From Mobula birostris (taxonomy: Eukaryota), in the NCBI RefSeq assembly GCF_030028105.1, contig NC_092373.1, positions 116,448,135 to 116,512,134 on the forward strand: a stretch of DNA of 64,000 nucleotides. Reading direction: 5' to 3'. The position numbers and the translations under genes are program-made. Below are positions 2,279 through 57,902 of this stretch, piece by piece; positions within the stretch are counted from its first letter, which is position 1, and each line of letters begins with the position of its first letter. The notes under the pieces were generated by a model. The model ran no database searches and had not been told where the DNA came from. It saw only the letters and a list, made by a program, of their open reading frames with translations.

Positions 2279-2518
<240 letters not shown>

Positions 2519-2575: not shown

Positions 2576-2800
<225 letters not shown>

Positions 2801-5292
2801 TAAGTAAAAAAACTCTTTAAAAAATAGAGTACTCTAGATCCCAGTTAAACCTTTTAATTCCAATAACAGTAAAATATATATAATAATCATTTATCTTCTC
2901 ACTGTAACTTATGAAACAAGGTGAGAATTTACACTGTCTCTGACTTCACACAGCGCAATACTAAATGGAATCTTAAATCAAAGTTTTATCTAATGAGTTA
3001 GGTAAGAATTCTGGAAGATGACCATTTGGTCCAACAGACTAATGTTAATTGGTTATTTAATGAAGTCATTGACTGGCTCTGAAACACTTGGGACATCCAT
3101 AGGGTAGAAATTTATTAGATATGCAGATTCCTATTTCCATATCAAGTTTAATCCACTCTAATATTATTTGCCTGTTCATTGCAGTATATTTTAATTTAGT
3201 GCCGCTAACATAGATAATTATGCAGAGATAAATTTGCACTTGTCTTTAATAAAGGACTTGCTGTTGCCTGACCGAGCAAGGTTGTTAATCTCATGTCTGT
3301 TATTAAACACATTCAAGTTAAATCTTGATTGTGGATGGTCACTACCAGAATCTTTCCACTTAAAAGTTCATAGTTCAATGTCCAAATTACATTTCTTTTA
3401 TCAAAGTATGTATAAATTATACAACCTCGAGATTTGTCTGATTACAGGCAGCCACAAAACAAGAAACCGAAAATAACCCAATTTATAAAAGACCAACACC
3501 CATTGCGCAGAGAGAGGAAAAAACCACAAATCATGCAGACAATAAAAGCAAACAACAACATTCAGAATGAAAGAAGCCACGAAGCCTGGACTAACTGGAG
3601 CAGGCCCATAGGCTCAGCCTCAGTTTAACACACAGCAGGGCAAATCGTAATGAACCCTGAAGCCTGGAGCAGCCCTAGCAGAACTGACTCAACCTTCCCC
3701 TACACTGTGTTCTGGATGACCACATGACTGTGAGATATTTAGGCATGTCATGCTGTTTTGGCAATGACTGCGTAACCCCATCCCACCACATTATGTGACG
3801 TTGACTGCAATCCCACCATTTTTATCCCCTGCTTGTCCTACTCCCAGAGCAGTTATCACAGCCACCTCTGAGGGAAAGACTCTCGTGAGAAGAAAGAATC
3901 ACAGGGAAGATTGCATGCTGAGATGAACCTCCCACTCTATTGTCCCAGTATTGAAGATATCGGATGAGGTGATCGAGCATTAATGAGAAACGATGACTTG
4001 TAGAGGAAAGTGTAACATTCTGTTGAGCGGGTTCATTGTTTGCTGACTGAGTGAAATGTTCAAGTTCAACTTTATTGTCATCTGACCGTACACATATACA
4101 AACAAATGAAACAATGTTCCTCCAGACCATGTTTCACCCACAAAAGATATATCATACACAGCACATAAGCCAAAATATTACCATAAATACTGAAGATTAA
4201 TAAAATATAATTCAAAATGCATGTAATGCACAGAGCAGGTAAACAGTACAGTCTACAGTATAAAGCTCTCTGTCCTAGTGACAAGACCCCAGTGGTGGCA
4301 GTATGTTCATTAGTCTCACAGCCTGAAGGAAGAAGCTGTTCCCCTTTCGGCAGTCCTAATCCCAATGCTTCTGTACCTCCTTCCTGATGTTTTATATTCT
4401 GTGGGTATTTTTTTTTTGCCATTTGCATGATATGTTGGGTGTTTAATGTTTTACTTCCATAAGTTCCATGGTGTTTCTTTGTTTTGTAGCTGTCTGTGGG
4501 AAGAAGACTCTCAGGGCTGTATCCTGCATTTGTACTTTGAAAATAAATGTACTTTAGAAATTTGAACTTCAAGGCCATGTAGGGCACTTGGGGCCTGCCT
4601 GTGTCTCTTACATAAATCAGATTGCATTAATAAGGCATTTATATCTGAAAGAGAAATTACTTTCTTAAGTGCTCTGTAAATTCAAGATCTGAAAAGGAAG
4701 AAAATGGAAAGCATAGTAAATCAGTTTGTATTGATGAGCAGTTTATATCTGAAACACAGATTTGTTTTGAATTCAGTATTAAGCTTTTGAAATTAGATTG
4801 GTAAAATAAAATTCAAAAATTGGAAATCATACTAGGTTCAAAAAAGAAGAAAAATACAGTTTTAAAGTGAATTTGTATTTATAATACTTTAAGAATTATT
4901 AAAATCGGAAATGTGAGATCACATAATTGTAAAGGCTCCAAGAGAAGTTATTTTGGAGTAATTGTCCTACAATACCATTAAATGGAAAAGAAGGGTTCTA
5001 TTCAAAGTCCACATTCAATCCATGTTTGTAATATCAGTGCAGGAATTTTGTACCATTCAATATATTTGACTGGGAACCCAGTTATTATTTTTAAGCAGCT
5101 TATGGAGGCAAAGTAAGATGTGACAGACCACTTGTGGATTTCGCATCTAACTCCTCACGTCTGCTGAGAACTGCTCACCATGAACTGCCTATTCAGTTGT
5201 CCATAAATGTTCTCAGTTCCACTGCGTCTTTTCTAATGACTTTCAATCATATCTGGTCAGTTGATAAATCACCAAAAGAACTGCTTTACTGA

Positions 5293-5580
<288 letters not shown>

Positions 5581-8192: not shown

Positions 8193-8363
8193 ACCCCAGA
8201 ATTACATCTTCTGCCAAGGTGAATTTGTTCTCAACCCCTGTGTTAGAAGATGAGAATCTGTCCCAGTCTGAAGGCCACTCTTCCACTACCCGTTTCAATA
8301 AAGATAAGATTACTCCTGAACTCCAGCCAAGACCCACACTTGTGGCAGAGATAATGATATCAG
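8193..8363 (+). CDS. EGF: pro-EGF linker exon, (Y)PRITSSAKVNLFSTPVLEDENLSQSEGHSSTTRFNKDKITPELQPRPTLVAEIMIS
   Basis: cag acceptor, gtaatt donor, phase 1-1. Ends in the conserved LVAEIM(V/I)S motif. The exact acceptor is less certain than the donor. Confidence 0.85.
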
Positions 8364-10152
8364 GTAATTGCTGCTCTGATAAGCATTTACTTTTACCTAT
8401 TACTACACAGAAATAAATTACTTGTCCACTCCATTCCATACTAGCTTCGAGCAGAGCAACTCCATCAATTTCATTACCCATCTCCAACTTCCGTTAGCCC
8501 AACAAGTTGTTTGCACTTATATCTCCATTAATTACAGTTTAATTATTTTACCACATTAAACTACACTGTTAATGGATGGTAGTTATTTAACTGAATAAAG
8601 TGAGAGAACCCTTGCAATTACAGTCTCCAAAACATCTCCAGTCAGCATCAAACCCAGATCCCTAGAGCTGTGAGTTAGCAACGGTAAACTAATTGGGCAT
8701 TGTGCCACCAGGAGCAGACACAGTTAGGGATTTTCTAAAAAAAATAATGCAAACTTCGAAACTGCAACTTGTGAGAATGCAATCATTTAGGCTTTCATAC
8801 TTAAGACTAAAAGCTTTGACTATATTAATGCAAGCAACCTATGATTGGATCTTTATTCCTAACTATGATTGCATTTTACTCAATAGAATGGGGGTGATTA
8901 ACAGATTCACCAATTATAGCTTTCTTACTCATGCAGCTGTTTATACAACTTATTTAGCAATTAATATAATCCAGACTGAAAATTTAAAAATAGTCCCATG
9001 GAATTATCAAAAAGCTACACTAAATTCCATAACAAGAATTGGTCGTCTATTGAACAATAAACATTGCTCAGATAAAAGCAGATGAGAGAGGCCATTCAAG
9101 ACATTTATCAAATCAGAAGGAAACATTCAGACTTAGTCTGCACTAAATGTATGTAAGATTAATTCAGATAGACTCACTTTCCAGCACTTCCCCATAGCAT
9201 TATAATATAAGTATTTAGCCAGCATTTTGACCGACTCTGCCTCCATTACTCCTGGCAATGTATTTTTGGACCTAATCACCCGCTCTGCAAATATATTTTT
9301 GTCATGTCACTTTTGGTTCTTTTGTCAATGACCTCCATCTAATTTTCTTCATGTCACTGGAAACAGCTCTCTCTACTTACTGTGCCCAGAGCCTTTATGA
9401 TTTTAAATTAATCTATCATATCCCCTAACAAACTGCTCTGCCCCAAGGAAAGCAACCTCAGGTTTACCAAAGTCAACCACTCATGCTCTGAATTATTGTT
9501 CACATTCTCTTGAAAGCATCGCATCCTTCCTAAACTGCGCTGCTCAGGAATGTATACCACACTGCCGTTGTCATTAATTCAATGTTACATAAAGATTCAT
9601 TGTGATATACTTCCTCTTTGATCAGATTAAGATCAAAGTTCTTGTGGAAGTATTCCAAGGACAGTCCTCCCTTGCTCGAGTTCATTAACATAAAGTTGAT
9701 CAGAACTTTATTTGTTGCGTGTAGCACTTTGCAATCAGCCGGTGTCTGATACACAGCACCTAACATATTCCTCCAGGTTTCAGATTGTATTTACAAATGG
9801 AAATAATAATAATCACTCAAAAAGTACAAATTCTTTCACTTTCACAGTTACTTTGACTGTACTCTTCCGCTCATTCACAAAGCGCTAAATATACTTCCAT
9901 ATATGAAGTCTAGCCTTTCTCACTGTACCTGAGCCTAATAAACTGCAGAATGTGTCAGCCTGAAATGGGAGTAATTTGGACCAAGCTTGACTATTCCATT
10001 TGGTACTGAATATACTAATAGGGTACCTAGCCTCCACTTCCTTATTTCTGTCCTATTGTGCTAATTTGTATGTTTTTTTCTACACTTTCCTTAGAACAAA
10101 GATAATGCAAACACATTTATTTACCAAGTTGCCTTGATTTCCTTTTTTCAAG

Positions 10153-10269
10153 ATCAAGATGACTGTGGAATCTTGGAATGTGATCTCAATGCTCAGTGTA
10201 TAGTATCAGAAGGAATTGCGAGATGCCAGTGTTCGGAAGGATTTACTGGGCAAGGCAACATCTGCAATG
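10153..10269 (+). CDS. EGF: pro-EGF exon: EGF-like module, DQDDCGILECDLNAQCIVSEGIARCQCSEGFTGQGNICN
   Basis: ttttttcaag acceptor, gtaatg donor, phase 1-1, six Cys. Matches QDDC...C...A.C.....CQCLKGFAGDG..C. Confidence 0.95.
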
Positions 10270-10529
10270 GTAATGAGTTGAGTCTAATTATTAATTAGTT
10301 AATTAGTTACCTTGTGTTTGAGCTTTCAATTCTCCATGAAAGTGATTTCTTTTGAAGATAGGATGGAATGCAACCTTGTTGATTTTGTTCTTCTGTGACA
10401 TATTGATTATAGACTGGTTTTACACGGTTCATATTTTTTCAAATAATTTCCTAATCTGTGGAAATGTTATTCCATGTCCACCACCACTTCCAATCTTCAG
10501 TTTCTAGTCATATTGCCAAAATATTATTG

Positions 10530-12225
10530 TGCGTTGCATGGTGACGAGAGGGCGTACCAAATTGAGACATACCAGCTAGCTGTTGGTGTCACAGCAACAA
10601 CTTTGTATTCAACATCAGTAAGACCAAAGAGCTGATTGTGGACTTCAGAACGTGTAGGGTTAGGGAACATGAACCAATCCTCATAGAGGGATCAGAAGTG
10701 GAGAAAGTGAGCATTTCCAAGTTCGTGGGTGTTAATGATTAGTGGTGTTCTGCAGGGATTGGTGTTGGGACCACATCTTTTCATGTTATATGTCAATGAT
10801 TTGGATGAAGGAATTGATGGCTTTGTCTAGGTTTGTATACAACACGAAGATAGGTGGAAGGGCAGGTCGTGTGGAGAAAGCAAGGAGTCTGCATACGGTC
10901 TTTGACAGATTGGGAGACTGGGCAAAGAGGTGTCAGATGGAATATACTGATGGGAAGTGTATGCTCATGCACTTTGATAGAAAGAATAAAGATGTAGACA
11001 AAGGTTTTGGGGACATAGCCTCAAGATTTGGGGGAGTAGATTTAGGATGGAGATGAGGAGGAACTGCTTTTCCCAGAGGGTGTTGAATCTGTGGAATTCT
11101 CTGCCCAATGAACCAGTGGAGGCTACCTCAGTAAATATGTTTATATATTTAAGATAAGGTTGGATAGATTTTTGCATAGTAGGGGAATTAAGAGTTATGG
11201 GAATAGGCAGATAGGTGGAGATGAGTCCATGGCCAGATCAGCCATGATCTTATTGAATGGCGGAACAGGCTTGATGCACCAAATGGCCTACTCCTGCTCC
11301 TATTTCTTATGATCTTATTTTCTAAACGGAGAAAATTCACGAATCAGAGACGCAAAAGCACTTGGGGATCATCGTGCAGAATTCCCTAAAGGTTAATTTA
11401 CAGGCTGAGGTGGTGGTGAGGAAGTCAAATGCAATATTAGCATTAATTTCAAGATGAATAGAATAAAAGAAAAAGGATGTAATGCTGAGGCTTTATAAGG
11501 CATTGGTCAGACTGCACTTCTAATATTGTATGAAGTTTATCTAAGAAAAGATGTGTTTGCATTTGAAAGGGCCCAGGAGAGGTTTACAAGAATGATTCCA
11601 GGAATGAAGGTGTTATCATATGAGGAGTATTTGATGGCTCTGGACTTGTACTTGCTGGAGTTTAGAAGAATGAGGGGGGATCTCATTGAAATCTATCAGA
11701 TATTTAAAAGGCTAGATAGAGGGGATATTTGCTAGACTGGGGGAGTCTAGGACCAGAGGACACAGCCTCTGAATAGAGGACGTGTGCATGTGAGCTTGAC
11801 TTCAATGTTTAAAACAAGTTTGGATGGGTACCTGGATATTAGGAGTTTTGGTGTCTATGGTCTGGGTGCAGGTCAATGGGACTAGGCAGTTTAAATAGGT
11901 CAGCACAGAGCAGATGGGCTGAAAGGCTTGTTCCTGTGTTGTACTTTTCAATGACTCTATGACGTCAATTTAGAACAGAGATGAGGAAGAATTCCTTTAG
12001 CCAGAGAGTGGTGAATCTATGGAATTCATTGCCACAGATGACTGTGGAGCACAAGTCACACTTAAAGAGGAAGTTGATAGGTTCTTGATCAGTCAGGGTG
12101 TTAAAGGTTTTGGGGAAAAGGCAAGAGAATGTGGTTGAGAGGGATAATAAATCAGCCATGATAGAATGGCAAAGCAGACTCGATGGGCTGAATGGCCTAA
12201 TTCTGCTCCTTATGGTCTTATAATG
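10530..12225 (+). mobile_element. Nested LINE stack: Rex1/Babar RT fragment (~10530-10736) followed by a CR1 3' region interrupted by two further CR1 tails
   Basis: SKTKELIVDFR-type Rex1 motif, then CR1 RT motifs (ERAQERFTRMIPGMKVLSYEE...RGDLIE). One internal insert is flanked by GACGT at 11779-11783 and 11961-11965. Confidence 0.75.
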
Positions 12226-12491
12226 TAATAGCATTACGCTAACCGCTATGCTGTCCTGCTGCTCCTGGATTCAGAATGATTTTTTAAATATACAGTAAAA
12301 CCCTGTCATATTGTGATTTGTGTTCCCTAATGGCCTCTTACTGATAAGCCTCCACTGTATTCTGCAGCTGGCCAGATTATTTGAAACAAACAAGCTGCGT
12401 AATGGAAATTACTCATCTACCAGTCCCCAGGGTCTGAAGATTCATTGGAGCTGTTAGTTATTTCATGATGCAAAATGTTATTTCCTTATAA

Positions 12492-12616
12492 ATATTGAAG
12501 AATGCGTAACTACCTTTGCACTGTGCATTGAATGCATAGCAGACTGAATTAACACGGGGCAGCTCTGTTTGTAGATGTCATCCTGGTTACTGTAGTGATG
12601 GGCTTTTCTGTTAATG
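12492..12616 (+). pseudogene. EGF: Pseudoexon of EGF: dead calcium-binding EGF module, IEECVTTFALCIECIAD*INT(fs)GSSVCRCHPGYCSDGLFC(fs)N
   Basis: Acceptor reads TAA instead of TAG (12489-12491). In-frame TGA at 12545-12547 replaces Cys3. 2-nt deletion near 12557 and 1-nt insertion near 12612. gtgaaa donor at 12617. Cys spacing 4/11/18/27/29/40 and gene position match the module otherwise missing from this gene. Confidence 0.9.
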
Positions 12617-12689
12617 GTGAAAGATTTACTCATAGATGATGTTCTGCTGGTGGAAAGCATATGGTTTTGTGACTTTTTTTCTTGTAGCC

Positions 12690-15560
12690 TTTTAAAGAAA
12701 GGGGGAAAGGGAGTAACGAGGGTGGAGCTTAGTTTGAAAGATTAAGAACTGGAATTAGTTTGGACAAAGTTGGGAAATAGTATTAAGTAGGAAACATTGG
12801 AGGCATTTGTATGAAAGCACAGAAGCAACAGCAGCAATGCAGGAAATTGTGAAAATCATGGACTTAGAGTTGCATATTAATGCAATAATTATAAGGAAAC
12901 TGCAAAACATATAGAGATTCACACACCAAAGTAGTATTAATAGCGTAGAAAATAAAGTTATGTGGTTTATTAAAGATGTGTGTGTAGTTCAGTATGATCA
13001 GGAACCAACACCAGAACAGAATATTTTGTATGTGGTACTGTGTCATGAGAAAGGGTTCATCAAGGAGTTTGTCAATAAGGGGCCTTTAGGGAACGCTGAT
13101 CACAATCTGATGGGATTTGATATAAAAAATCATTCTAAATCTAACGTGTTAAACTTGAATGAAGCAAACTAAGAAGGCATGTTGCATGAATTGGCAATAG
13201 TACACTGGGAAACATTATTAAAAGATATGACCAAAACCAGCATTGGCGAATACTTAAAGAATTTTTACCTAAGTTATAATTCATAAATATCACACGCATA
13301 CACACACACGCACACACATGCACACAGCCTTGTTACCCTGCTGTCATCGCACTGAATGTGCACATACCTTCTCCAGTAAATTCTCATAATGTGCCCTAGA
13401 CTGAGCTGATACGTTCAGGTTGGCTTTATGGTACCTTTCCCACCATACAGAGCAGAATAATGGGGATGTGTAAAAATGTACCTGTTATTTGTATACTGTA
13501 CTTAAGGTAGATACTTCTGTTTATCTTATAATATAATTGTAGCTACTTTTTGGGGTGCATCATAACCCCACCTTTCAAAGCAAAAGTGCTCCGCCGGTGA
13601 AGTGGTGGAGCCTTGGTTACAGGAAGAAATTAAAAGTAACATTAGATCAAAGGGAAATGTTCATTTCATCTCCTGAAAAGCCAGTGAGCCAGGGGATTGG
13701 AATATTTCAGAATTTCAGCAAGAGAGGACTAAGGCACTCAAAAGGTAGGAGAATTAGAATATGAGGGTATTGTAGTAAGAAAAGTAAAATTGAGCTGTAG
13801 AAACTTCCATAGAAAAAGATTAATTAATGTTGATATGGATCCCTTACAGACCAAGGCAGAAAAATATGTATGCAGCTAGGAAATATATTAAATAAATATT
13901 TTATAATTGTTTTCCCAATAGATGGCACAGCAAAACCTTCTAAAATGTGCAGAACAATGAAATGAGTTCAAATAAATTGGTATTAGTAAAAATTAGTATT
14001 TAAGAAATTAGTGGAATGGAAAAGCATTAAATATCTAGAATCTGTTGATAACCATCCTAGAATTTAAGAAGTGGTGGCAGTGGAGAAAATAGACATACAA
14101 ATGACCATTTCCTGACATTTCAGAGATTTTAGAATGGTTCTTATAGATGGAAGGCGACAAATATAACCCTACTATTTAGAGGAGAATAACATCAGTTGCA
14201 GGGGAAATACCAGAATTTAGTATTAAAGAAGTGATAATAGGACACAGAAAATGACATTTCAATCGGACAAAATCTATGTGGATTTATGAAAGAGAAATCA
14301 GATTTGGTAAATCTCCTGGAATTGTTTTGAGTTTGTAGTTAGGAACATAATTAAGGCTGATGTAGCTGGGACAGTGCATTTGGACTTTTAGAAAGCTTTC
14401 CATGAGGCACCAAGCAAAAGATAGTTTTAAAAAGAATGAGCAATAACATAGATTAGGAATAATATATTGCAATGGATGAAGGATTGGTTACTAGGTAGAA
14501 AACAGAAGGAATAAATGGGTCATTTTGGGTTGGGAAGATGTGACCAGTGGGTAGCGTGGGGTTCACTGCTGGCATCCCTGTTGTTAACAGTCTATATTAA
14601 AGATTAGGATGAGGAGATCAAGTGCAATGTATCAAAATTTGCTGATGACACGAAGCAGAGTGACCATACTGACAGTGAGAAGGATGAGAAAGGTTTTAGT
14701 GTGATTTCCAAACAAGAGAGAATCTGCAGATGCTGGAAATCCAAGCAACACATGCAAAATGCTGGAGGAACTCAGCAGGCTAGGCAACATCTATGGAAGA
14801 ACAGTACTGTCGATGTTTCAGGCCGAAACCTTTCGGCAGTCCTGTACTGTACTTTTTTCCCGTGGATGCTGCCTGGCCTGCTGAGTTCCTCCAGCATTCT
14901 GTGTGTGTGTTGCTTAGTGTGATATACACAAGTTTAGTGAGTGGACAGGAAGGTAGCAGACAAAATAGGGTGCAGAAAGATTTAAGAAACAACTTTGGTG
15001 GAAAAATATAGAAAGATGGGGTATTTTTTGATTGATGAGAGCTTGAAAGGTGTTGAGGTTCAGAAAGGCCTAGGTGTCCTTTAGTATGAGTCAATAAAAA
15101 ATAACATGCACAGAAACGAACACTGGTTGACTAGTCTGATTCCTGGTCATAATGGGCTTGTCCTGTGAGGAGAGTTCAAGCCAAGTGGCTGTCTAACTGC
15201 TTGTATTTTGAAGAAAGAGTGATAATTGTTGAAAATGTAAAGTCCTTACCAGCATGGCAGTGTAGATGCAAACACAATGTTTCTGAAAATTAGGGATCAA
15301 CCTTTCGGAGATAAAAAGATTGGTTTCACCCTAAAAGGTCGTGAATCTTACATTTCTCTGCCTAAGAGGATCTCAATGGCTCGATTGTTGAATATATACT
15401 AGAAAGGCATAAATCGTTTTTTGGATACTAAGGGAACCAGGGGATGCAGGGCCACAGTAGTTCAGAAAAAAGGCATTGAAGAAAAGATCAATCAACAACA
15501 TCTGACTGAATGAGAGGGTAACAATAAGGGAGCCGAATGACCTGCTGTTCCTACTCCTCA
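12690..15560 (+). mobile_element. Old, heavily decayed CR1 LINE (endonuclease to RT to 3' tail) with internal insertions
   Basis: Remnant motifs QEPT..QNIL..VLC, GPLGNADHN, LDF.KAF, SKFADDTK. (CA)n at ~13289-13326. Confidence 0.65.
14706..14913. mobile_element. Fold-back Penelope terminal fragment inserted in CR1, 10-bp TSD
   Basis: Inverted arms (ATGCTGGAGGAACTCAGCAGG / CCTGCTGAGTTCCTCCAGCAT). TTAGTGTGAT at 14696-14705 and 14914-14923. Confidence 0.8.
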
Positions 15561-15763
15561 TCTCCCTATTTAAAATTTGTAAATTGGATTATTTTTCAGT
15601 CTTTGTCAAACTTGTTAAAACTGGTCATCAGTATAAATTACTGATACATTAAACGTATGTGTATGCATATAAATGAAGTGTATATATGAAACGAGATAGG
15701 AAGGTGATAATTATACGTCAGATTTATGGTGCGTTCCAACATGATTCTAATGTTGGTTTTCAG

Positions 15764-15886
15764 ATATTGATGAATGCAAAACTGGGGTGCACAATTGTGA
15801 TGAAAATGCTTTCTGCACGAATACAAATGGAAATTACAGCTGTACGTGTTACAAAGGATTTATAGGCACAGGATATCATTGTTTGC
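15764..15886 (+). CDS. EGF: pro-EGF exon: calcium-binding EGF module, DIDECKTGVHNCDENAFCTNTNGNYSCTCYKGFIGTGYHCL
   Basis: ttttcag acceptor, gtaagt donor, phase 1-1. DIDEC and C-x-N-x4-Y-x-C cbEGF signature. Confidence 0.95.
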
Positions 15887-15924
15887 GTAAGTAGACAAGC
15901 TTTACACTGAATGAGTCTCTTATT

Positions 15925-16160
15925 TTATTGAGATGTAGCGCGGAATGGGCCCTCACGGCTCTTCAAACCTCGCTGCCCAGCAATCCTCTGATTTTATCCT
16001 AGCCTAACCACAGACAATTTACAGTGACCAATTCGGTCTGTGGGAGGAGACCAGAGCACCCGGAGGAAACCCACGTGGTCACGGGGAGAACGTCCAAACT
16101 CCTTACGGGTAGCGGTGGGAATTGAACTCAGGTCACCTGCACTGTAAAGCATTGCAAGCC
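15925..16160 (-). mobile_element. tRNA-derived V-SINE (HE1-like)
   Basis: Reverse complement of the V-domain (GTTCTCCCCGTGACCACGTGGGTTTCCTCCGGGTGCTC) and a B-box-like GAGTTCAATTCC. Confidence 0.75.
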
Positions 16161-16614: not shown

Positions 16615-16798
16615 GTACAATCAGCTCTGCGGCACCCACTGAAAGTTTGACAGAAGCAACTGCCAGGAGCGTCATATCAGAGATACCGACACACAAACCG
16701 GAGAATCACATGGTGAACTGCCCATATTCACACGAAGACTTCTGTCTGAATGGAGGAATTTGCTTCCTTATCACCGAGATAACATCAATTTCATGCAA
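16615..16798 (+). CDS. EGF: pro-EGF exon: Ser/Thr-rich stalk plus N-terminal part of mature EGF, (R)TISSAAPTESLTEATARSVISEIPTHKPENHMVNCPYSHEDFCLNGGICFLITEITSISC
   Basis: ccag acceptor, gtaaat donor at 16799. The phase-2 intron between Cys4 and Cys5 is typical of ErbB-ligand EGF motifs. C-x7-C-x5-C-x10-C spacing. Confidence 0.93.
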
Positions 16799-17074
16799 GT
16801 AAATAAAAGCAATGATATGTGTACTGTTCACATTCCTGAGCATAAAATGTAAAATAGCCTACTGAGTGGCAGAAAGTAGAAAGTACAAAGGAATTAAAAT
16901 ATCCTACAAGTTTAATGCAAGGGAAAGGAATTCTTGAATTTATGTTTCCCATAACTCCGGAGTGATATTTTTGTAGTTTTGAAGTTGGAGATCTATCATA
17001 ATCCTGGTCAATATATAAACAGGGAGAACCTGTCAAAGATGTGAGATGATTTGTTGAATGACAAATATTGCATG

Positions 17075-20700: not shown

Positions 20701-21534
20701 GTGTTGATAGAGATAGCTACATGAGGGAGATAAAAGAGACTCTTAGAGAGGCACATAGATGAAAGAAAAATGGAGGTCTATGTGAGAGGGAAGGGTTAGA
20801 TTGACCCGGAGTAGGTTGAAAGATTGGCATAATATCGTGGGTCGAAGGGCAAGTGCCATGCTGGCCTGTTCTATGCTCTAAACTAGAAATGGGTTTCAGA
20901 ATAGGTATAGTAATGAGCTGGGCTGAACAGAGGACGTGGGTCTGATACCGGGACATCAGTAAGGCTGCTTTCCTCTGGCCATCCTTCCCGAACTTGACAC
21001 TGCCTCTGGCCCCAGCCACCTCTGATGGAAGTGCTGTGACTGTTCATTGGGGAGTAATCTCTGACATCTGCTGGTTCCAGTCTGGGCAGCACTCACAGAC
21101 AGGCAACAAGAGAGTAAGTGGGTGTGAGAGGGGCTGAAGGTAATGCCGCAGTCCAACCACTTGCAACAGTTCTGTGGAAACTGCCGTGCCTCCTGGCTCC
21201 CTGCATAAATTGGTAATCTAGTTTATTTTTATCTCACGGGATTTACAGGGAGAAACTCTGGCTTACAGGCCATCCACCACAGATTAGATCATCACATCAG
21301 TATATTGAGGTGGTATCAGGGAAAATCAATAACAGAATGCAGAATAGAGTGTTACAGTTTCAGAGAGAGTGCAGAGGAGGCCAACAGTACAATCCAAGGC
21401 CACGGCAACGTAGACAGTGAGGCCAAGGGTCATTTCTCATCCAAGGGGGCTGTTCAATAGTCTGACAACAGTGTGACAGAAGGCACAGGTATTCCACATC
21501 CTCTCTCCTCACCCATTTTCTGCTGCTTTTACAG

Positions 21535-21699
21535 CTGTCCTAAAGGTTATGTGGGGGAGCGGTGTGAGTACAGTGACTTACAATGGTGGGAACTGCGCCA
21601 ATTTGAGGAAGAGAAGAGGCGTAATGTGGTTATTGCCGCATGCATGATGGTGTTAATCTGCTTGTTGTCAGTGGGAGCTTGTGTTTCGTACCGCATTGG
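21535..21699 (+). CDS. EGF: pro-EGF exon: C-terminal part of mature EGF plus transmembrane helix, (N)CPKGYVGERCEYSDLQWWELRQFEEEKRRNVVIAACMMVLICLLSVGACVSYRI
   Basis: ttttacag acceptor, gtgagt donor at 21700, phase 2-2. GY.GERC.Y.DL.WWELR is diagnostic of EGF. Confidence 0.97.
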
Positions 21700-21869
21700 G
21701 TGAGTATAAACAGGTGATATCCACAGTAATTTGCATATAAATCGAAAAGCACAACACATCAAGCAGTTACTGTATATATTAATCCATGATTAGCAGAACT
21801 TAGGTTTCTGACCTGAAAAATCTCTCTCCCCACAGGTGTGTCCTAATTTGTTGAGCATAATGTCACTTC

Positions 21870-28700: not shown

Positions 28701-28818
28701 ACAATCATGCTCCCTCATTTTTATCTTTCCTTTACTTTCCAAGTTAACAGTTCAAATGCTTCACTCACTGTTAATTGTACATGGAGCTTGGTTAATTACA
28801 ACAGGTTTTGTTTCCTAG

Positions 28819-28924
28819 ATTCCAGAAGCATTTCAAGAAGAGCCATTATCAGGAAGAAATGAGTCAAACAAGCTGCAGTAGCATTGACAATGTAACCGAA
28901 ACTTCAACAAACAATGAACAGCAG
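28819..28924 (+). CDS. EGF: pro-EGF first cytoplasmic exon, (G)FQKHFKKSHYQEEMSQTSCSSIDNVTETSTNNEQQ
   Basis: tttcctag acceptor, CAG/gtaatt donor, phase 2 to phase 0 compatible with the TM exon. Basic juxtamembrane stretch and Y-x-E-E resemble mammalian QKLLSK...PYEES. Confidence 0.8.
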
Positions 28925-45860: not shown

Positions 45861-46592
45861 CGAGACCTCAAACTTTATCCTCATACAAGCTCTTTTTCCA
45901 ACTCACAAGAGGCTGCCTGACTTGCTGGGTTTTGCCAGCATTTTCTGTTTTATTTCAGATTTCTAGCACCGACAATTTTGATTCTTACAGCTGGTAAACT
46001 CTGGCAGTGCACTATCACCAGGACGTTTACTATGTGTGGAGCTGTACAGTAGTAGAAAGTAAGCCAGCTGGGCCTTTCTGCACATTTTTTTTTGGTTCCT
46101 TTCACATAATCTTCCATCACACTCTGTACACAAGAGTGTCTCAAAATTCTTCTGTGACTGGAGAACAGATGCCATAGAGTCGTATATGCCTTCCAGACCA
46201 TTGAGTCACCCACTTCACATTCATCTTTCTCCTGGTCTTTCCAGAAACGTCCGTCAGGTTGTACTACTCAGCTACACACTGGGGCAGTTTACAGTTCACT
46301 TACCAACCTGCATGCCTTTAGGAATGGGATGAGACGGGAGCACCCCTAGGAGTCTCCTGCAGTCACAGACTGAACATGCAAACTCCGCACAGACAGCACC
46401 AGATGTTGTAGTTGTGTCGAGGAGATGGAGCTCTATTAGATAAGCTTGATTTACTTGTTGCTTGTGCATTGAAACATAAGGAGAATTGCATTGTTTGTGA
46501 AAAATCTGCAAGTGTCGCCACATTTCTGATGCCAATGTAGCAAGCCTTCAACTCACTAACCCTAACAGTACCTCTTTGGACTGTGGGAGGAA

Positions 46593-48775
46593 ACTGCAAC
46601 ACAGAGGAAACTCACGTACAAACCGGAGCACACGAGGAAACTCACGTACAAACCGGAGCACACGAAGAAACTCACATACAAACTGGAGCACACGAGGAAG
46701 CTCATGTACAAACTGGAGCAAACAAGGAAACTCACGTACAACCTGAGCACACGAGGAAACCCACGTACAAACCGGAGAACATGAGGAAACCGACGTACAA
46801 ACTGGAGCACACAAGGAAACTCACGTACAAACTGGAGCACACGAGGAAACCCACATACAAACCGGAGAACACGAGGAAACTCACGTACAAACCGGAGCAC
46901 ACGAGGAAACTCACGTACAAACTGGAGCACACGAGGAAACCCACGTACAAACCGGAGAACACGAGGAAACCGACGTACAAACCGGAGCACACGAGGAAAC
47001 TCACGTACAAACCGGAGCAAACAAAGAAACTCACGTACAAACCGGAGCACACGAGGAAACTCATGTACAAACAGGAGCACACGAGGAAACTCACGTACAA
47101 ACAGGAGCACGCGAGGAAACTCACGTACAAACCGGAGCACGCGAGGAAACCCACGTACAAACTGGAGCACACGAGGAAGCTCACGTACAAACTGGAGCAC
47201 ACGAGGAAACCCATGTACAAACCGGAAAACTTGAGGAAACTCACGTACAAACTGGAGCACACGAGGAAACTCACGTACAAACCAGAGCACACGAGGAAAC
47301 CCACGTACAAACCGGAGCACACGAGGAAAACCACGACCAAACCGGAGCACACGAGGAAGCTCATGTACAAACTGGAGCAAACAAGGAAACTCACGTACAA
47401 CCTGAGCACACGAGGAAACCCACGTACAAACCGGAGAACACGAGGAAACCAACGTACAAACAGGAGCACACGAGGAAACTCACGTACAAACTGGAGCACA
47501 CGAGGAAACCCACGTACAAACCGGAGCACACGAGGAAACTCATGTACAAACCGGAGCACACGAGGAAGCTCACGTACAAACCGGAGCAAACAAAGAAACT
47601 CACGTACAAACCGGAGCACACGAGGAAACTCACGTACAAACAGGAGCACACGAGGAAACTCACGTACAAACAGGAGCACGCGAGGAAACTCACGTACAAA
47701 CCGGAGCACGCGAGGAAACCCACGTACAAACTGGAGCACACGAGGAAGCTCACGTACAAACTGGAGCACACGAGGAAACCCACGTACAAACCGGAAAACT
47801 TCAGGAAACTCACGTACAAACTGGAGCACACAAGGAAACTCACGTACAAACCGGAGCACACGAGGAAACCCACGTACAAACCGGAGAACACGAGGAAACT
47901 CACGTACAAACAGGAGCACGCGAGGAAACTCACGTACAAACCGGAGCACGCGAGGAAACCCACGTACAAACTGGAGCACACGAGGAAGCTCACGTACAAA
48001 CTGGAGCACACGAGGAAACCCACGTACAAACCGGAAAACTTCAGGAAACTCACGTACAAACTGGAGCACACAAGGAAACTCACGTACAAACCGGAGCACA
48101 CGAGGAAACCCACGTACAAACCGGAGAACACGAGGAAACTCACGTACAATCCGGAGCAAATGAAGAAACCCACGTACAAACCGGAGTACACGAGGAAACT
48201 CATGTACAAACCAGAGCACACGAGGAAATCCACGTACAAACCGGAGCAAACGAGTAAACTCACGTACGAACCGGAGCACACGAGGAAACCCACGTACAAA
48301 CCGGAGTACACGAGGAAACTCACGTACGAACCGGAGCACACGAGGAAACCCACGTACAAACCAGAGCACACGAGGAAACTCACGTACAAACTGGAGCACA
48401 CGAGGAAACCCACGTACAAACCTGAGCAAACGAGGAAGCTCACGTACAAACTGGAACACACGAGGAAACTCACGTACAAACCGGAGCACACGAGGAAACT
48501 CACATACAAACCTGAGCACACGAGGAAACTCACCTACAAACCGGAGCAAACGAGGAAACTCACGTACAAACCGGAGCACACGAGGAAACTCACATACAAA
48601 CCTGAGCACACGAGGAAACTCACCTACAAACCGGAGCAAACGAGGAAACTCACGTACAAACCTGAGCACACGAGGAAACTCACGTACAAACTGGAGCACA
48701 CGAGGAAGCTCACGTACAAACTGGAGCACACGAGGAAACCCACGTACAAACCGGAGCACACGAAGAAACTCACAT
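46593..48775. repeat. 30-bp minisatellite, ~72 units, consensus CCGGAGCACACGAGGAAAC(T/C)CACGTACAAA, embedded in a minus-strand V-SINE (~46550-48845)
   Basis: 30-nt periodicity is directly visible. The left flank TTTGGACTGTGGGAGGAAAC and right flank GGAATTGAACC are V-SINE parts. Confidence 0.97.
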
Positions 48776-49024
48776 CCTTTCAGGCAGCAGCAGGAATTGA
48801 ACCCTGGTCTTACAGCTGGCGCTAGGAAGCGATTGTGCCAACTACTTCACATTAGTTGTGCTACTTCACTGCCCACTTTCACTTTCTTACCTTTCTCCCT
48901 CCCTCCTGACACGTTAAAGGTGCATCGTGTGGCAGATCAGCATAATGTCTGGCCAGTTCCACCACTGCAAAGTCCTCTTATGAACAAGTCCAAGTTACCC
49001 AGATAGAACACGAGGAGAATCTGT

Positions 49025-49560: not shown

Positions 49561-50756
49561 CATTTTTTAAACTATATCAAACCAGAATCAAACCTGATTT
49601 TGATTCTCCATACTATGGCTATGGGTAAAGAAAATAAATTTAAAGGTAGAATGAAACCATTCAGTTCCTTCCAAAGAATGTATCAAAAACCCAGGAGAAC
49701 TACAGGATCATTTACAAGCCTGTAATTTAATTTTGTGCTCAGTTATAAACTGCTTAAACTTTGCTCTCTTCTTTCACTACCGCAGTGGCACTATTTCACT
49801 AATCACACCCAGGTGTCCATTTGTTCCAAACTATATAGAGAATTGTTTGTTCATTAACTAACATAGAGTGTAGAATAACTAACATCTAATAGATAATTCC
49901 TTAAAGCTCTGTCCCTGTGGTCTATTTTATGCTATTTAACTTGCCTTTTGTTCCAGTTTTTGGATAGCTTTCCTAATTGCTGGGTGAGCAAACATGTGTT
50001 ATGTCTAAGTACAGTGACTTTGAACATCACTTGCATTATCTGCATTGAGGTCCCTTGTCTAAGTTTTTTTTGGATTTTGATGGAATTTGCAAAGAGAAAA
50101 ATTCAACATTGATTGTTGGCAGATGCAAGACCATTGGATATCAATTGCAGACATTTATGCATATGTGCAGAGGTAATTGCAACCAACCACCATCATCTGC
50201 ATGAACATTCAGCACCAGTAATGTGGTTTTCAATTACCTTTGGGATCTGGATGTTGCTGACAGAGCCTGCATTTATTTCACATCTCTAATTGCCTTTTGA
50301 AAAATTGGGTACAATGAACCGAAGTGGAGGTACACCCAGAGTGCTGCTGGATAGGGAGTTCCATGAGCTGTATTTGCCATATCTTATTGGATCTAACATC
50401 TACTCCATTACTGTTCCAGTCTTTCACGGGAGTGGAATCTAATTGGAAGCTTGGAGACACAAGTATTGTCCACATTATCAGAGTTGAAACTCAGGACCAT
50501 GCTGCAGAATCAGGTTGGCATTTTCCCCCTTGCTTTCCAGTCCTGATGAAGGGTCTCGGCCCAAACATCACTGTTTATTCCTTTCCATAGATGCTGTCTG
50601 ACCCGCTGAGTTCCTCCAGCATTTTGTGTGTGTTGCTTTAGAAATTGTTTTTGAAGTTGGAATTATACGTGAGATTTCTAGGGTGGGATTGATTCTCTTT
50701 CTATTTTTTAGCTCATCATGTTTTGACCTAACAAGATAGGAAGCTTTTCAGCTTGC

Positions 50757-52047: not shown

Positions 52048-52271
52048 TGTAAAATAAAGCTGAAAACTTCATTCATTTTGATCTTCTAAATAATACTATT
52101 GTTATTCGCCTTTAACCTATATCCAAACTACTAAAACCAATGAGGATAGCTATATTTTATTTTCGAGATGGAAATTTTTTACAATATTTGGAAATAGTAA
52201 TAAAAAGGAACTGTAATGATATGCATCATTCAATTTGACCCTAAACATACTTATTTCTATTGTGTTACCAG

Positions 52272-52498
52272 TACAACGTGGAATGCTTGCAGTGTGTCAC
52301 GATGGAGCTGGTTGTCATTTAAAGAAGATGAAAGGTCAATGTCTTCACCAACAAGTGCCATATAATTACATGAAAAAGTCAGCAACGTATCCTAGGCACA
52401 CCTCTACTGGATCCTCGTTATCACAAGAAGCCAGCCCTATTATCTCAGCAACCACCGGGATGACTTCACAGAACCATGAACCAAGGACATTCATTTAA
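52272..52498 (+). CDS. EGF: Candidate terminal exon of EGF (frame unresolved)
   Basis: Branch-like CCCTAAAC, T-rich tract and CCAG acceptor in unique sequence. The phase-1 frame is open for 75 codons; the phase-0 frame stops after 16. No recognisable homology. Confidence 0.3.
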
Positions 52499-55140: not shown

Positions 55141-56884
55141 GATTTAAAAGAGATTTTGTAATGTATGGGTATATTTCTTTTAGAGCAATGACTCCCCTTA
55201 GCACTATGTATGGACTGTTGTCTATGCATTCATCTTGTTCTCTCTGTATGTCTGTCTCTCTCTCTGTCTCACTGCAACGTGAATGCACCAGTTAAAGCCA
55301 TCTCCCGCATGCGTGCTTTTATTTAATTTGGTGTGTCTGTGCAACAAGTATGAATCACCATGGCATAGAAGGTTGCAGGTTAAGTACTGAAAACTGGGAT
55401 TAGTAAAGAATACTGGCATGAACTTGACAGCCAAAGGGCCTTTTTCTCAGTTGTATGATGATGTGACACCACAGAGCACAGAACTTTGATGTAAAACTCC
55501 TCAGTGAAGGCACATTTAGACGTTACGTCACTAATCCACTAAGTACAGATCATAACTTATTTTCCTTCTTTTAATACTATATTTATTACCATGTTAAAAA
55601 TCCAATAAAACATTACATTTGAAAGCTTTCTTTGTATTAATTAAAAGGGACCAAAACTTTTACTTTAAAATAATTTGAAAAGTTAATTCTTAGCTTTGCT
55701 TCAGTTTTCCAGGAGGTATTCTGTATGTGAGTCCTGTTTCCAATCTCTGTTCCCAGTAAAAAGAATACTCAAACTAGATAGGAATAGATCAAGGCCTTCT
55801 ATCACCCTGGTGATACAACTGTACTACAAGTTAGGTCTGTCTTGATATGACTGACATTTTGCACAACTGATTACAATAGTTAGCTCTTGCAAAATGTTAT
55901 ACTTTTGGCAGAAACTCAGTATAAAATAACATAGATTGCAAGTTCACAACTTGAAAATACTCATTGGAGATCCTCTTACTAATCCTGCCAGCTAGAATTA
56001 GTGATACCTGGTGTGGTTTTTTAATGAGGATCTCTTTAAAATGCATTTCTCACAAAAGGATCATTTATAAACAATGAAATATTTCTTTCTAGACCAATTA
56101 CACCTTGAGTATGAATCATTAGTTTCATTGATATATGAATCATTAGTATCATTAGTTTCTGATCAATTTGACTATTTCACTTGGAAGCTATGAAGTCATG
56201 TAACATAACAAAGGATAATTTATTTCAGTGTAGGTGAAGAAATACTCCCAGTTGGGGTTAGACAGCAAGAACCGCACAGAAATAATGTCTACAGCTCCTT
56301 CCCAGTTTATGAGACTTATTTACAACCAATACATACAAATATGCATTTGGGAGCCCGTTGGGTTGAATTTGCTATCTGTATTAGGCCGCACACAATTTCT
56401 GCCGTATGAGAACTCAGTTCACATTTGCTTTTTTGACTTGCAATCTGTTCAAATTATGAACAGTTCTCAAGAATGAGAACCCTGTTGAAACCTGCAAAGA
56501 CAAAGCAAGTGTATGTTCCCTTCACACATGCCAAGTGGAAGCTCCAATGACATACCCATATCATTTAAATAATAAGATAACATGCAAACTCACTTTGTTT
56601 TCTGAAATCCTACAGTCCTTCTTCATTTTTCCTCACCTCCCCAGCAAACACAACCACAATCATCCCACTTAATGCATCCTCTAAAGCTAAACCCATCACA
56701 GTCCTGTACTACTCAAAAACGGTCATTAGCAGGATCTCCTGAATAATTCTGCATTCCCTGGGGAATGGTGACATTCACTCCATGTATTTTCTTTGACGAA
56801 TGTGAAAAGAAGGTAAGTTGGACCTTATTACAGCACTATGCAATTAAGTTGCTGCATTCCCAGCATCGGGCCGAAGCTCACTCC

Positions 56885-57483
56885 ACATGGGGGGCTGCGC
56901 CAGGCCAGAGGTCACTCCCCACGGGAGGCTGTGTCAGGCCACAGGTCACTTCCCATGGGAGGCTACGTCAGGCTAGAGGTCACTTCCCACGGGAGGCTAT
57001 GTCAGGCTGGAGATCACTCCCCACGGGAGGCTGCGTCAGGCTGGAGGTCACTCCCCACGGGATGCTGCGTCAGGCTGGAGGTCACTCCCCACGGGATGCT
57101 GCGTCAGGCTGGAGGTCGCTCCCCACGGGAGGCTGCATCAGGCTGGAGGTCACTTCCCATGGGAGGCTACGTCAGGCTAGAGGTCACTTCCCACGGGAGG
57201 CTATGTCAGGCTGGAGGTCACTCCCCACGGGAGGCTGCGTCAGGCTGGAGGTCACTCCCCACGGGAGGCTGCATTAGGCTGGAGGTCACTCCCCACGGGA
57301 GGCTGCGTCAGGCTGGAGGTCGCTCCCCACGGGAGGCTGCGTCAGGCTGGAGGTCGCTCCCCACGGGAGGCTGCATCAGGCTGGAGGTCACTTCCCACGG
57401 GATGCTGCGTCAGGCTGGAGGTCACTCCCCATGGGAGGCTGCGTCAGGCTGGAGGTCACTCCCCACGGGAGGCTGCGTTAGGC
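56885..57483. repeat. 34-bp GC-rich minisatellite, ~17 units, consensus GCGTCAGGCTGGAGGTCACTCCCCACGGGAGGCT
   Basis: Direct 34-nt periodicity, with a 204-bp (6-unit) higher-order duplication. Followed by a SINE/LINE-like T-rich tail to ~57860. Confidence 0.95.
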
Positions 57484-57902
57484 CTCAGCAGATGAAGGCC
57501 CCATGGAAGGACTGAGTTCGATCCTGACGGAGGATGTTTTTGAACTTCTGAGACGTATGTGATTATTGTTGTGGACTGTACTTTATGTTGGTCTCTTACA
57601 GTTTTCTCTCTTGTTGCTGACTAACAGGTGGGCGATATGTTACCTTTTTAGCTGAGAGAGAGGTTGGGGTTTTGGGATTTGGAGTGTGAGTTTTGTTTCT
57701 CTTTCTTTTTTGTACCGGGGGTGGGGGGCGCGCTTGATGTCTTTTCTTTCAATGACTTCCATAATTTTTCTGTATTTCATGGCTGTCTGGAGAACATGAA
57801 TCTCAGAATTGTATTCTGTGTAAATACTTTGATAATAAATTGAATCTTTGAACTTTTTTTGAACTCAGTGATACATATTTCCTTTTTGTTTATCCTAAAT
57901 AA

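Follow-up and report, generated by a model that had tools for sequence, protein, structure and literature searches.

The pro-EGF gene of a manta/devil-ray-type batoid very probably encodes an in-frame precursor that is one calcium-binding EGF module shorter than its ancestor, the exon for module 7 (M7) having decayed and being skipped in the mRNA. The window, as the whole 64,000-nucleotide stretch of DNA analysed here is called, carries the 3' half of this gene on the + strand. The relic of M7 sits inside a 5.5-kb intron between two intact EGF exons, exon A (module 6, M6) and exon B (module 8, M8). The case offers a view of domain shedding in a modular extracellular protein, with transcript proof that a phase 1-1 exon is skipped and rots in place. 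It also matters for annotation, given that ray pro-EGF is truly one calcium-binding module shorter and not mis-predicted. Knowledge of EGF signalling is unchanged by this finding, and the exons that encode mature EGF are intact. To our knowledge, no role has been established for the extra repeats of the EGF precursor.

The host gene can be followed across most of the window (Table 1). Exons were located from stop-free + frames and by local tblastn with fetched proteins. The ortholog set came from one search that started from the propeller exon and two that started from public pro-EGFs, with names following the NCBI/UniRef records. Annotated pro-EGFs give 10 colinear exon matches by tblastn between 2252 and 52495, as an ortholog of pro-EGF should, and the parts of the gene stand in colinear order: YWTD-propeller exons, EGF modules, mature EGF spread over two exons, a transmembrane segment, and a cytoplasmic tail. 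Per-stretch identity of the propeller exon is 41-53% with pro-EGF records versus 29-40% with long LRP-like proteins. The closest annotated protein is that of Mobula hypostoma (XP_062902420.1), with 88-100% identity per exon match, followed by Hemitrygon akajei and then Pristis pectinata. The exons in the window differ from the Mobula hypostoma protein at few residues, as befits a close relative, and the ray pro-EGFs match one another over their full length at 82-90%.

Table 1. Positions in the window of the pro-EGF exons, the relic of M7, and its lesions
Feature	Position	Strand	Evidence
YWTD-propeller exon	2281-2504	+	splice sites read; tblastn 50-73% identity to annotated pro-EGFs
Second YWTD-propeller exon	about 2610-2781	+	tblastn
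EGF-like exon after the propeller	about 5389-5520	+	tblastn, six-Cys pattern
Linker exon ending ..LVAEIMIS	about 8195-8362	+	tblastn, 98% to Mobula hypostoma pro-EGF residues 825-880
Exon A, EGF module 6 (M6), QDDC...GNICN, intact, phase 1-1	10153-10269	+	Pfam, transcript contig
Lost acceptor, TAA in place of an AG	12489-12491	+	aag| and cag| precede the intact exons A and B
Pseudo-exon, remains of the calcium-binding EGF module M7 (module 7)	12492-12616	+	sequence read, M7 tblastn matches
TGA in place of the third cysteine	12545-12547	+	under the invariant C of ..ADCINTEG.. in 15/15 orthologs
2-nt deletion, single G in place of the Glu codon of INTEG	12557	+	orthologs carry the Glu codon
TAATG, 1-nt insertion in the last codon plus split-codon G; TAA is a stop in the local frame	12612-12616	+	
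Donor GT, still there	12617-12618	+	
Exon B, calcium-binding EGF module 8 (M8), DIDECKTG...YHCL, intact, phase 1-1	15764-15886	+	Pfam, transcript contig
Linker and N-terminal half of mature EGF	16617-16799, approximate start	+	tblastn, 95% to Mobula residues 962-1021
C-terminal half of mature EGF and transmembrane segment	about 21533-21700	+	tblastn, 96% to Mobula and Hemitrygon
Three cytoplasmic-tail exons	about 28817-28924, 50396-50512, 52271-52495 (span 28817-52495)	+	tblastn

Both exons that flank the relic are recognized by Pfam. Exon A matches EGF_3 with 31.5 bits, above the cut-off of 28.5, and exon B matches EGF_CA with 37.7 bits and EGF_3 with 40.1 bits. Exon A ends as AAT G|gt at 10269 and exon B begins as ag|AT ATT GAT at 15764, so that both flanking introns are read from their borders as phase 1 and the split codon G+AT restores Asp. 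This bears out the proposal of an earlier note on this DNA that skipping of whatever lies between them is frame-neutral. The same note had ended exon B at 15887, which is one base too far given that the border reads TTG C|gtaagt at 15886.

The relic opens as AT ATT GAA GAA TGC... at 12492 and translates as IEECVTTFALCIECIAD up to the TGA that replaces the third cysteine, after which it continues as INT (12548-12556). Beyond the deletion, its second half reads GSSVCRCHPGYCSDGLFC at 12558-12611. Four lesions had been claimed for this exon, i.e., an acceptor changed to TAA, a third cysteine replaced by TGA, two nucleotides deleted at one place, and one inserted at another, and all four are found when the assembly sequence, which has no N anywhere in the window, is read. 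The one extra nucleotide of the insertion can be placed more closely than before: the preferred reading is a TAT codon with one base too many, because the residue after the last cysteine is Tyr in 3/3 skates and in most sharks. The length of the relic, 125 nt, equals 126 - 2 + 1. Disabling lesions thus lie in both the splice site and the reading frame, which is what marks a pseudo-exon.

The cysteine register of the relic (4/11/18/27/29/40) is that of the intact module of sharks and skates, with a stop at position 18. A single open frame with six cysteines is gone, the third cysteine being a TGA and the frame shifting twice, and two extra unpaired cysteines have appeared. Pfam finds no family for the piece at 12458-12544, and for the piece at 12540-12611 it gives EGF_3 at 21.1 bits, below the cut-off of 28.5. 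Calcium-binding EGF modules carry the N-terminal calcium-site motif D-x-D/N-E-C. The corresponding letters of the relic are (D)IEEC; their third residue, a Glu, is Asp in 13/15 orthologs and Asn in 2/15.

The amino acid sequence of the relic suggests relaxed constraint relative to exons A and B. Constraint was gauged at columns that show one and the same residue in all three skates and in four or more of six sharks. The window differs at 6/27 such columns in the relic versus 1/25 in exon A and 1/25 in exon B (Fisher p = 0.019), so that replacements in the relic are about six times those in the neighbouring exons. They are D2E, A5V, G7T, H14C, K28R, and G37S, two of which create the extra cysteines. 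Overall identity to elasmobranch orthologs is 58-66% for the relic versus 68-82% for the neighbouring exons, which makes the relic only moderately more diverged.

Several comparisons indicate that the relic is the ortholog of the ancestral M7 of pro-EGF, colinear with a coding exon of other vertebrates. All 15 M7 queries from other vertebrates match it by tblastn (best E 4.3e-9), and the same queries have other matches within 10270-15763 only at E = 5 and 10. The tblastn check that the earlier note had suggested with the human or a shark module thus holds for the intact module of shark, skate, chimaera, coelacanth, paddlefish, and others, which falls on 12491-12611 in 15/15 cases. The order of the modules is also kept: in paddlefish pro-EGF, residues 829-875 match exon A, residues 876-916 match 12491-12611, and residues 917-957 match exon B. 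When it is aligned by MAFFT with each of its two breaks written as X, the relic needs no further gap to fit the pattern ..DIDEC..ALC....ADCINTEGS.VCKCHPGY.GDGL.C.. of M7, to which it is 63-66% identical in three skates and 58-63% in six sharks. Three scans (a six-frame search for the cysteine pattern, tblastn with exons A and B, and the 15 M7 queries) found no intact EGF exon on either strand of 10270-15763, in agreement with the claim that none lies between exons A and B.

A transcript contig joins exon A directly to exon B. The data are four small runs from one study, taken as RNA by a guessed label, and their contigs were mapped on 10100-15950. In run X1, of 119 million letters, contig record 1 is 4528 nt long at a depth of 47. 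Its positions 1376-1493 match 10151-10268 with 2 mismatches, and its adjacent positions 1249-1375 match 15763-15889 with 1 mismatch. The joint falls at GT..AG borders, the one-base shift being the shared G. On their outer sides the segments run two or three bases too far, through chance identity with the adjoining exons of the message. A unique molecule of 4.5 kb at this depth that lacks the 5.5-kb intron can only be spliced mRNA, and in size and in the position of the joint it agrees with a complete pro-EGF message. The junction from 10269 to 15764 that the earlier note had predicted is therefore seen directly, in one X1 contig from which the relic is absent and in which its flanking exons are joined. 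Depth over the bin 12452-12647 is 0 in 4/4 runs, with exons A and B covered in X1. A contig that bridges exons A and B is present in only 1/4 runs. Because rare variants are lost from contigs, the relic may still be included in a minor isoform.

A simple series of events best accounts for these features. The ancestral juxtamembrane ectodomain had three consecutive EGF modules, M6, M7, and M8, each encoded by one exon and all phase 1-1. With the acceptor AG of M7 gone, the spliceosome joins the M6 donor at 10269 to the M8 acceptor at 15764. The precursor would have stayed in frame because both introns are phase 1 and G+AT restores Asp, which recreates a Cys-x-Asp-Ile-Asp-Glu-Cys junction, and the neighbouring modules would thus have rejoined through an identical junction. 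The product would be an in-frame precursor with one calcium-binding module fewer, and this shorter precursor is presumably fully functional. The abandoned exon would then drift without selection, picking up the nonsense codon at the third cysteine, the -2 and +1 frameshifts, and the two unpaired cysteines. The first step was presumably either the disappearance of the acceptor AG or routine skipping of the exon, of the kind predicted for a skate isoform.

Other origins for the relic can be weighed against decay of the ancestral M7. Because M6, M7, and M8 are all EGF modules, the relic might be a decayed duplicate of a neighbouring exon, and its DNA does align with exon B at a score of 25, which only 1/500 shuffles attained. 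This origin is scarcely credible given the global BLOSUM62 scores of the relic read through its breaks, which are 90-143 against M7, 26-47 against M6, and 40-69 against M8, i.e., two to four times higher for M7 in 15/15 species. The relic also keeps strings specific to M7 (..ALC.. and ..INT.GS.VC.CHPGY..DGL.C) and lies at exactly the position of M7 in orthologs, and together with the M7 matches and the alignment these scores identify it as the ancestral module and not a copy of a neighbour. Could the exon be intact in the animal and broken only by assembly or sequencing errors? Indels are the commonest long-read error and the lesions were read from an assembly, but four separate lesions of three kinds, joined by six replacements at otherwise conserved columns, would have to be explained, as would an mRNA contig without the exon and the lack of the module in four other ray species that were annotated independently. 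We regard such errors as highly improbable.

Decay would also be the wrong word if the relic still served as a regulated poison cassette exon, entered through a cryptic upstream acceptor and lowering pro-EGF output through its premature stop. The donor GT and the pyrimidine tract persist, a TAG stands upstream at about 12455-12457, and isoforms could be rarer than anything contigs can exclude. A retained role of this kind is nevertheless very unlikely, if slightly less so than an error in the assembly. Depth on the relic is zero in every run even where X1 covers both neighbours, its faster replacement and new cysteines argue for drift and not constraint, and no conservation data back such a role. 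Decay of a skipped M7 thus remains the preferred reading.

The survey of chondrichthyan genomes that had been called for to date the loss places it within the batoids. None of the 11 gene models from non-skate rays includes M7 (Narcine bancroftii 0/6, Pristis pectinata 0/2, Hemitrygon akajei 0/2, and Mobula hypostoma 0/1). It is present in 4/5 skate models (Rhinoraja, Leucoraja, and Amblyraja X1 and X2 with the module, Amblyraja X3 skipping it), in 20/20 shark models from 10 species, and in the one model of the chimaera Callorhinchus. Coelacanth, paddlefish, reedfish, lungfish, alligator, and newt have it as well. The earlier note had described a loss in the pro-EGF of the window; that loss is real, but it is not private to this species, being common to all four annotated species of non-skate rays. 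On the evidence of these models, the loss of M7 is a clade-level feature of rays other than skates, one that public annotation already contains implicitly.

The four ray proteins (XP_062902420.1, Hemitrygon akajei XP_072899158.1, Pristis pectinata XP_051901423.1, and Narcine bancroftii XP_069782269.1) have the same exon order as the window. Their M6-M8 junction, ..GNIC[NK]D[IV]DECKTGVH.., is that of the window's spliced form. These records are proteins only, so the relic in the intron is visible in the window and not in them. In Leucoraja erinacea (XP_055501326.1), Heptranchias perlo (XP_067863226.1), and Callorhinchus milii (XP_007895185.1), by contrast, M7 is intact with the same cysteine spacing. 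What is a relic in the window is thus an expressed exon in skates, sharks, and the chimaera, and the ray precursor has one repeat fewer in the M6-M8 cluster than its skate and shark orthologs.

The age of the loss depends on how many times it happened. A pro-EGF tree of 16 species groups Pristis with Hemitrygon and Mobula, the latter two as sisters (support 98/97). The loss presumably dates back to the ancestor that sawfish and stingrays share, or earlier. One loss is the parsimonious solution and two are possible. Tentatively, M7 may have died once, in the ancestor of electric rays, sawfish/guitarfish, and stingrays after the skates had branched off, with the relic legible ever since. Intra-batoid dates would make such a relic perhaps well over 100 million years old.

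Alternatively, M7 could have been lost at least twice, once on the line to sawfish and stingrays and separately in the electric rays, which would make the relic younger than the batoid orders. Skipping of the M7 exon in frame is easy, so that repeated loss would be likely on this account, and module loss is indeed recurrent here, with Paramormyrops missing M7 and M8 and hemiscylliid sharks missing M8. The single-gene tree places Narcine weakly with skates (57/30) and not with the other rays that lack M7, the four M7-less species come together in only 8% of bootstrap trees, and shark and skate M7 still share 58-66% of their residues with the relic. The relationships of the batoid orders are themselves described as being in conflict in a passage of PMC11756912. 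Against this stand parsimony, with 4/4 non-skate ray species lacking M7 and 3/3 skate species having it, and the monophyly of the four, which is not rejected (p-AU 0.17). The persistence of so many identities is also less telling than it may seem, because cartilaginous fishes evolve slowly and an old relic can therefore stay legible; the abstract of PMC3692497 gives their rates as lower than those of tetrapods by a factor of at least 2.4. For scale, the split of sharks and batoids is put at about 270 Ma in a passage of PMC13023373 and at 306 or 261 Ma in PMC3692497. Independent losses are on balance rather unlikely.

The relic, by its presence or absence and by whether its lesions are shared, offers a cheap character for the branching of batoid orders and for calibrating neutral decay in slow genomes. 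If there was a single loss, any lesions held in common would count as a rare genomic change and back skates as sister to all other batoids, and the relic would serve as a natural clock by which to time neutral decay in the genomes of rays. The position of skates as sister group is a matter on which morphology and molecules conflict, as described in part of PMC11756912.

Module loss and skipping in this part of pro-EGF recur across vertebrates, which makes the loss of M7 less surprising. The exons of M6, M7, and M8 act as cassettes in predicted isoforms. Among the six predicted for Narcine bancroftii, X3 skips M6, X4 skips M8, and X6 skips both; predicted isoforms X3 and X4 of Pleurodeles skip M8, just as predicted isoform X3 of Amblyraja does with M7. 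Whole sets of models can also be affected, with M7 and M8 missing from 3/3 models of Paramormyrops and M8 missing from the lungfish model. In the hemiscylliid sharks Chiloscyllium plagiosum and Hemiscyllium ocellatum, M8 is absent from 4/4 models. In Chiloscyllium punctatum, 3/4 models (X1, X3, and X4) keep M8 with Arg for the third cysteine, and X2 skips it. These models point to a possible second, independent module loss in pro-EGF through decay of M8. It would be a parallel case in the same protein and in a neighbouring calcium-binding EGF exon, differing in the module and the lineage concerned and in that the exon is still annotated as coding in one species.

The architecture involved lends itself to such losses. 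Modules of the LDL-receptor/EGF-precursor type are encoded by symmetric phase 1-1 exons of one domain each, which can be dropped in frame, leaving a pseudo-exon. Relative to exon death in phase 1-1 modular proteins in general, the M7 case stands apart in being dated, clade-wide, and accompanied by transcript proof. Human proEGF has nine EGF-like repeats, the most membrane-proximal of which gives rise to mature EGF, according to a passage of PMC2138042. The overall architecture is the same, with the relic matching one of the repeats that immediately precede mature EGF. In the literature searched, no description of module loss in ray pro-EGF was found.

Other matches to EGF modules in the window were set aside. 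A possible second relic at 12401-12433 (NGNYSSTSPQG, found by tblastn with exon B) is due to chance, since unrelated places in the window score 25-33. It includes an exact 12-mer at 12401-12412 (+), about 80 nt upstream of the relic, that is shared with exon B at 15826-15837 and scores 24. Within an upstream intron, 12/15 M7 queries (best 24.3 bits) match the peptide ALGACLCLLHKSDCIN at 4584-4631 (+), which is similar to the first half of M7. It too is put down to chance, as 7/60 block-shuffled windows match as well.

The window also carries repeats of several kinds. In the intron between exons A and B, two stretches that flank the relic, 10492-12255 and 14608-14999, consist of high-copy transcribed repeats (transposable elements): the contigs that match them, at 90-99% identity, number in the thousands, and in each of the four runs their summed depths lie between 10^3 and 10^5. 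A long tandem array at about 46500-49000, in an intron between tail exons, is open in all three + frames (units like HEETHVQTGA / TRKLTYKPEH / RGNSRTNRST) and gives Cys-rich repeats on the - strand. A second tandem array at about 56750-57500 is likewise open in all three + frames, with units like GGCVRLEVTPHGRLRQAGGHSPREAASGWRSLPT.
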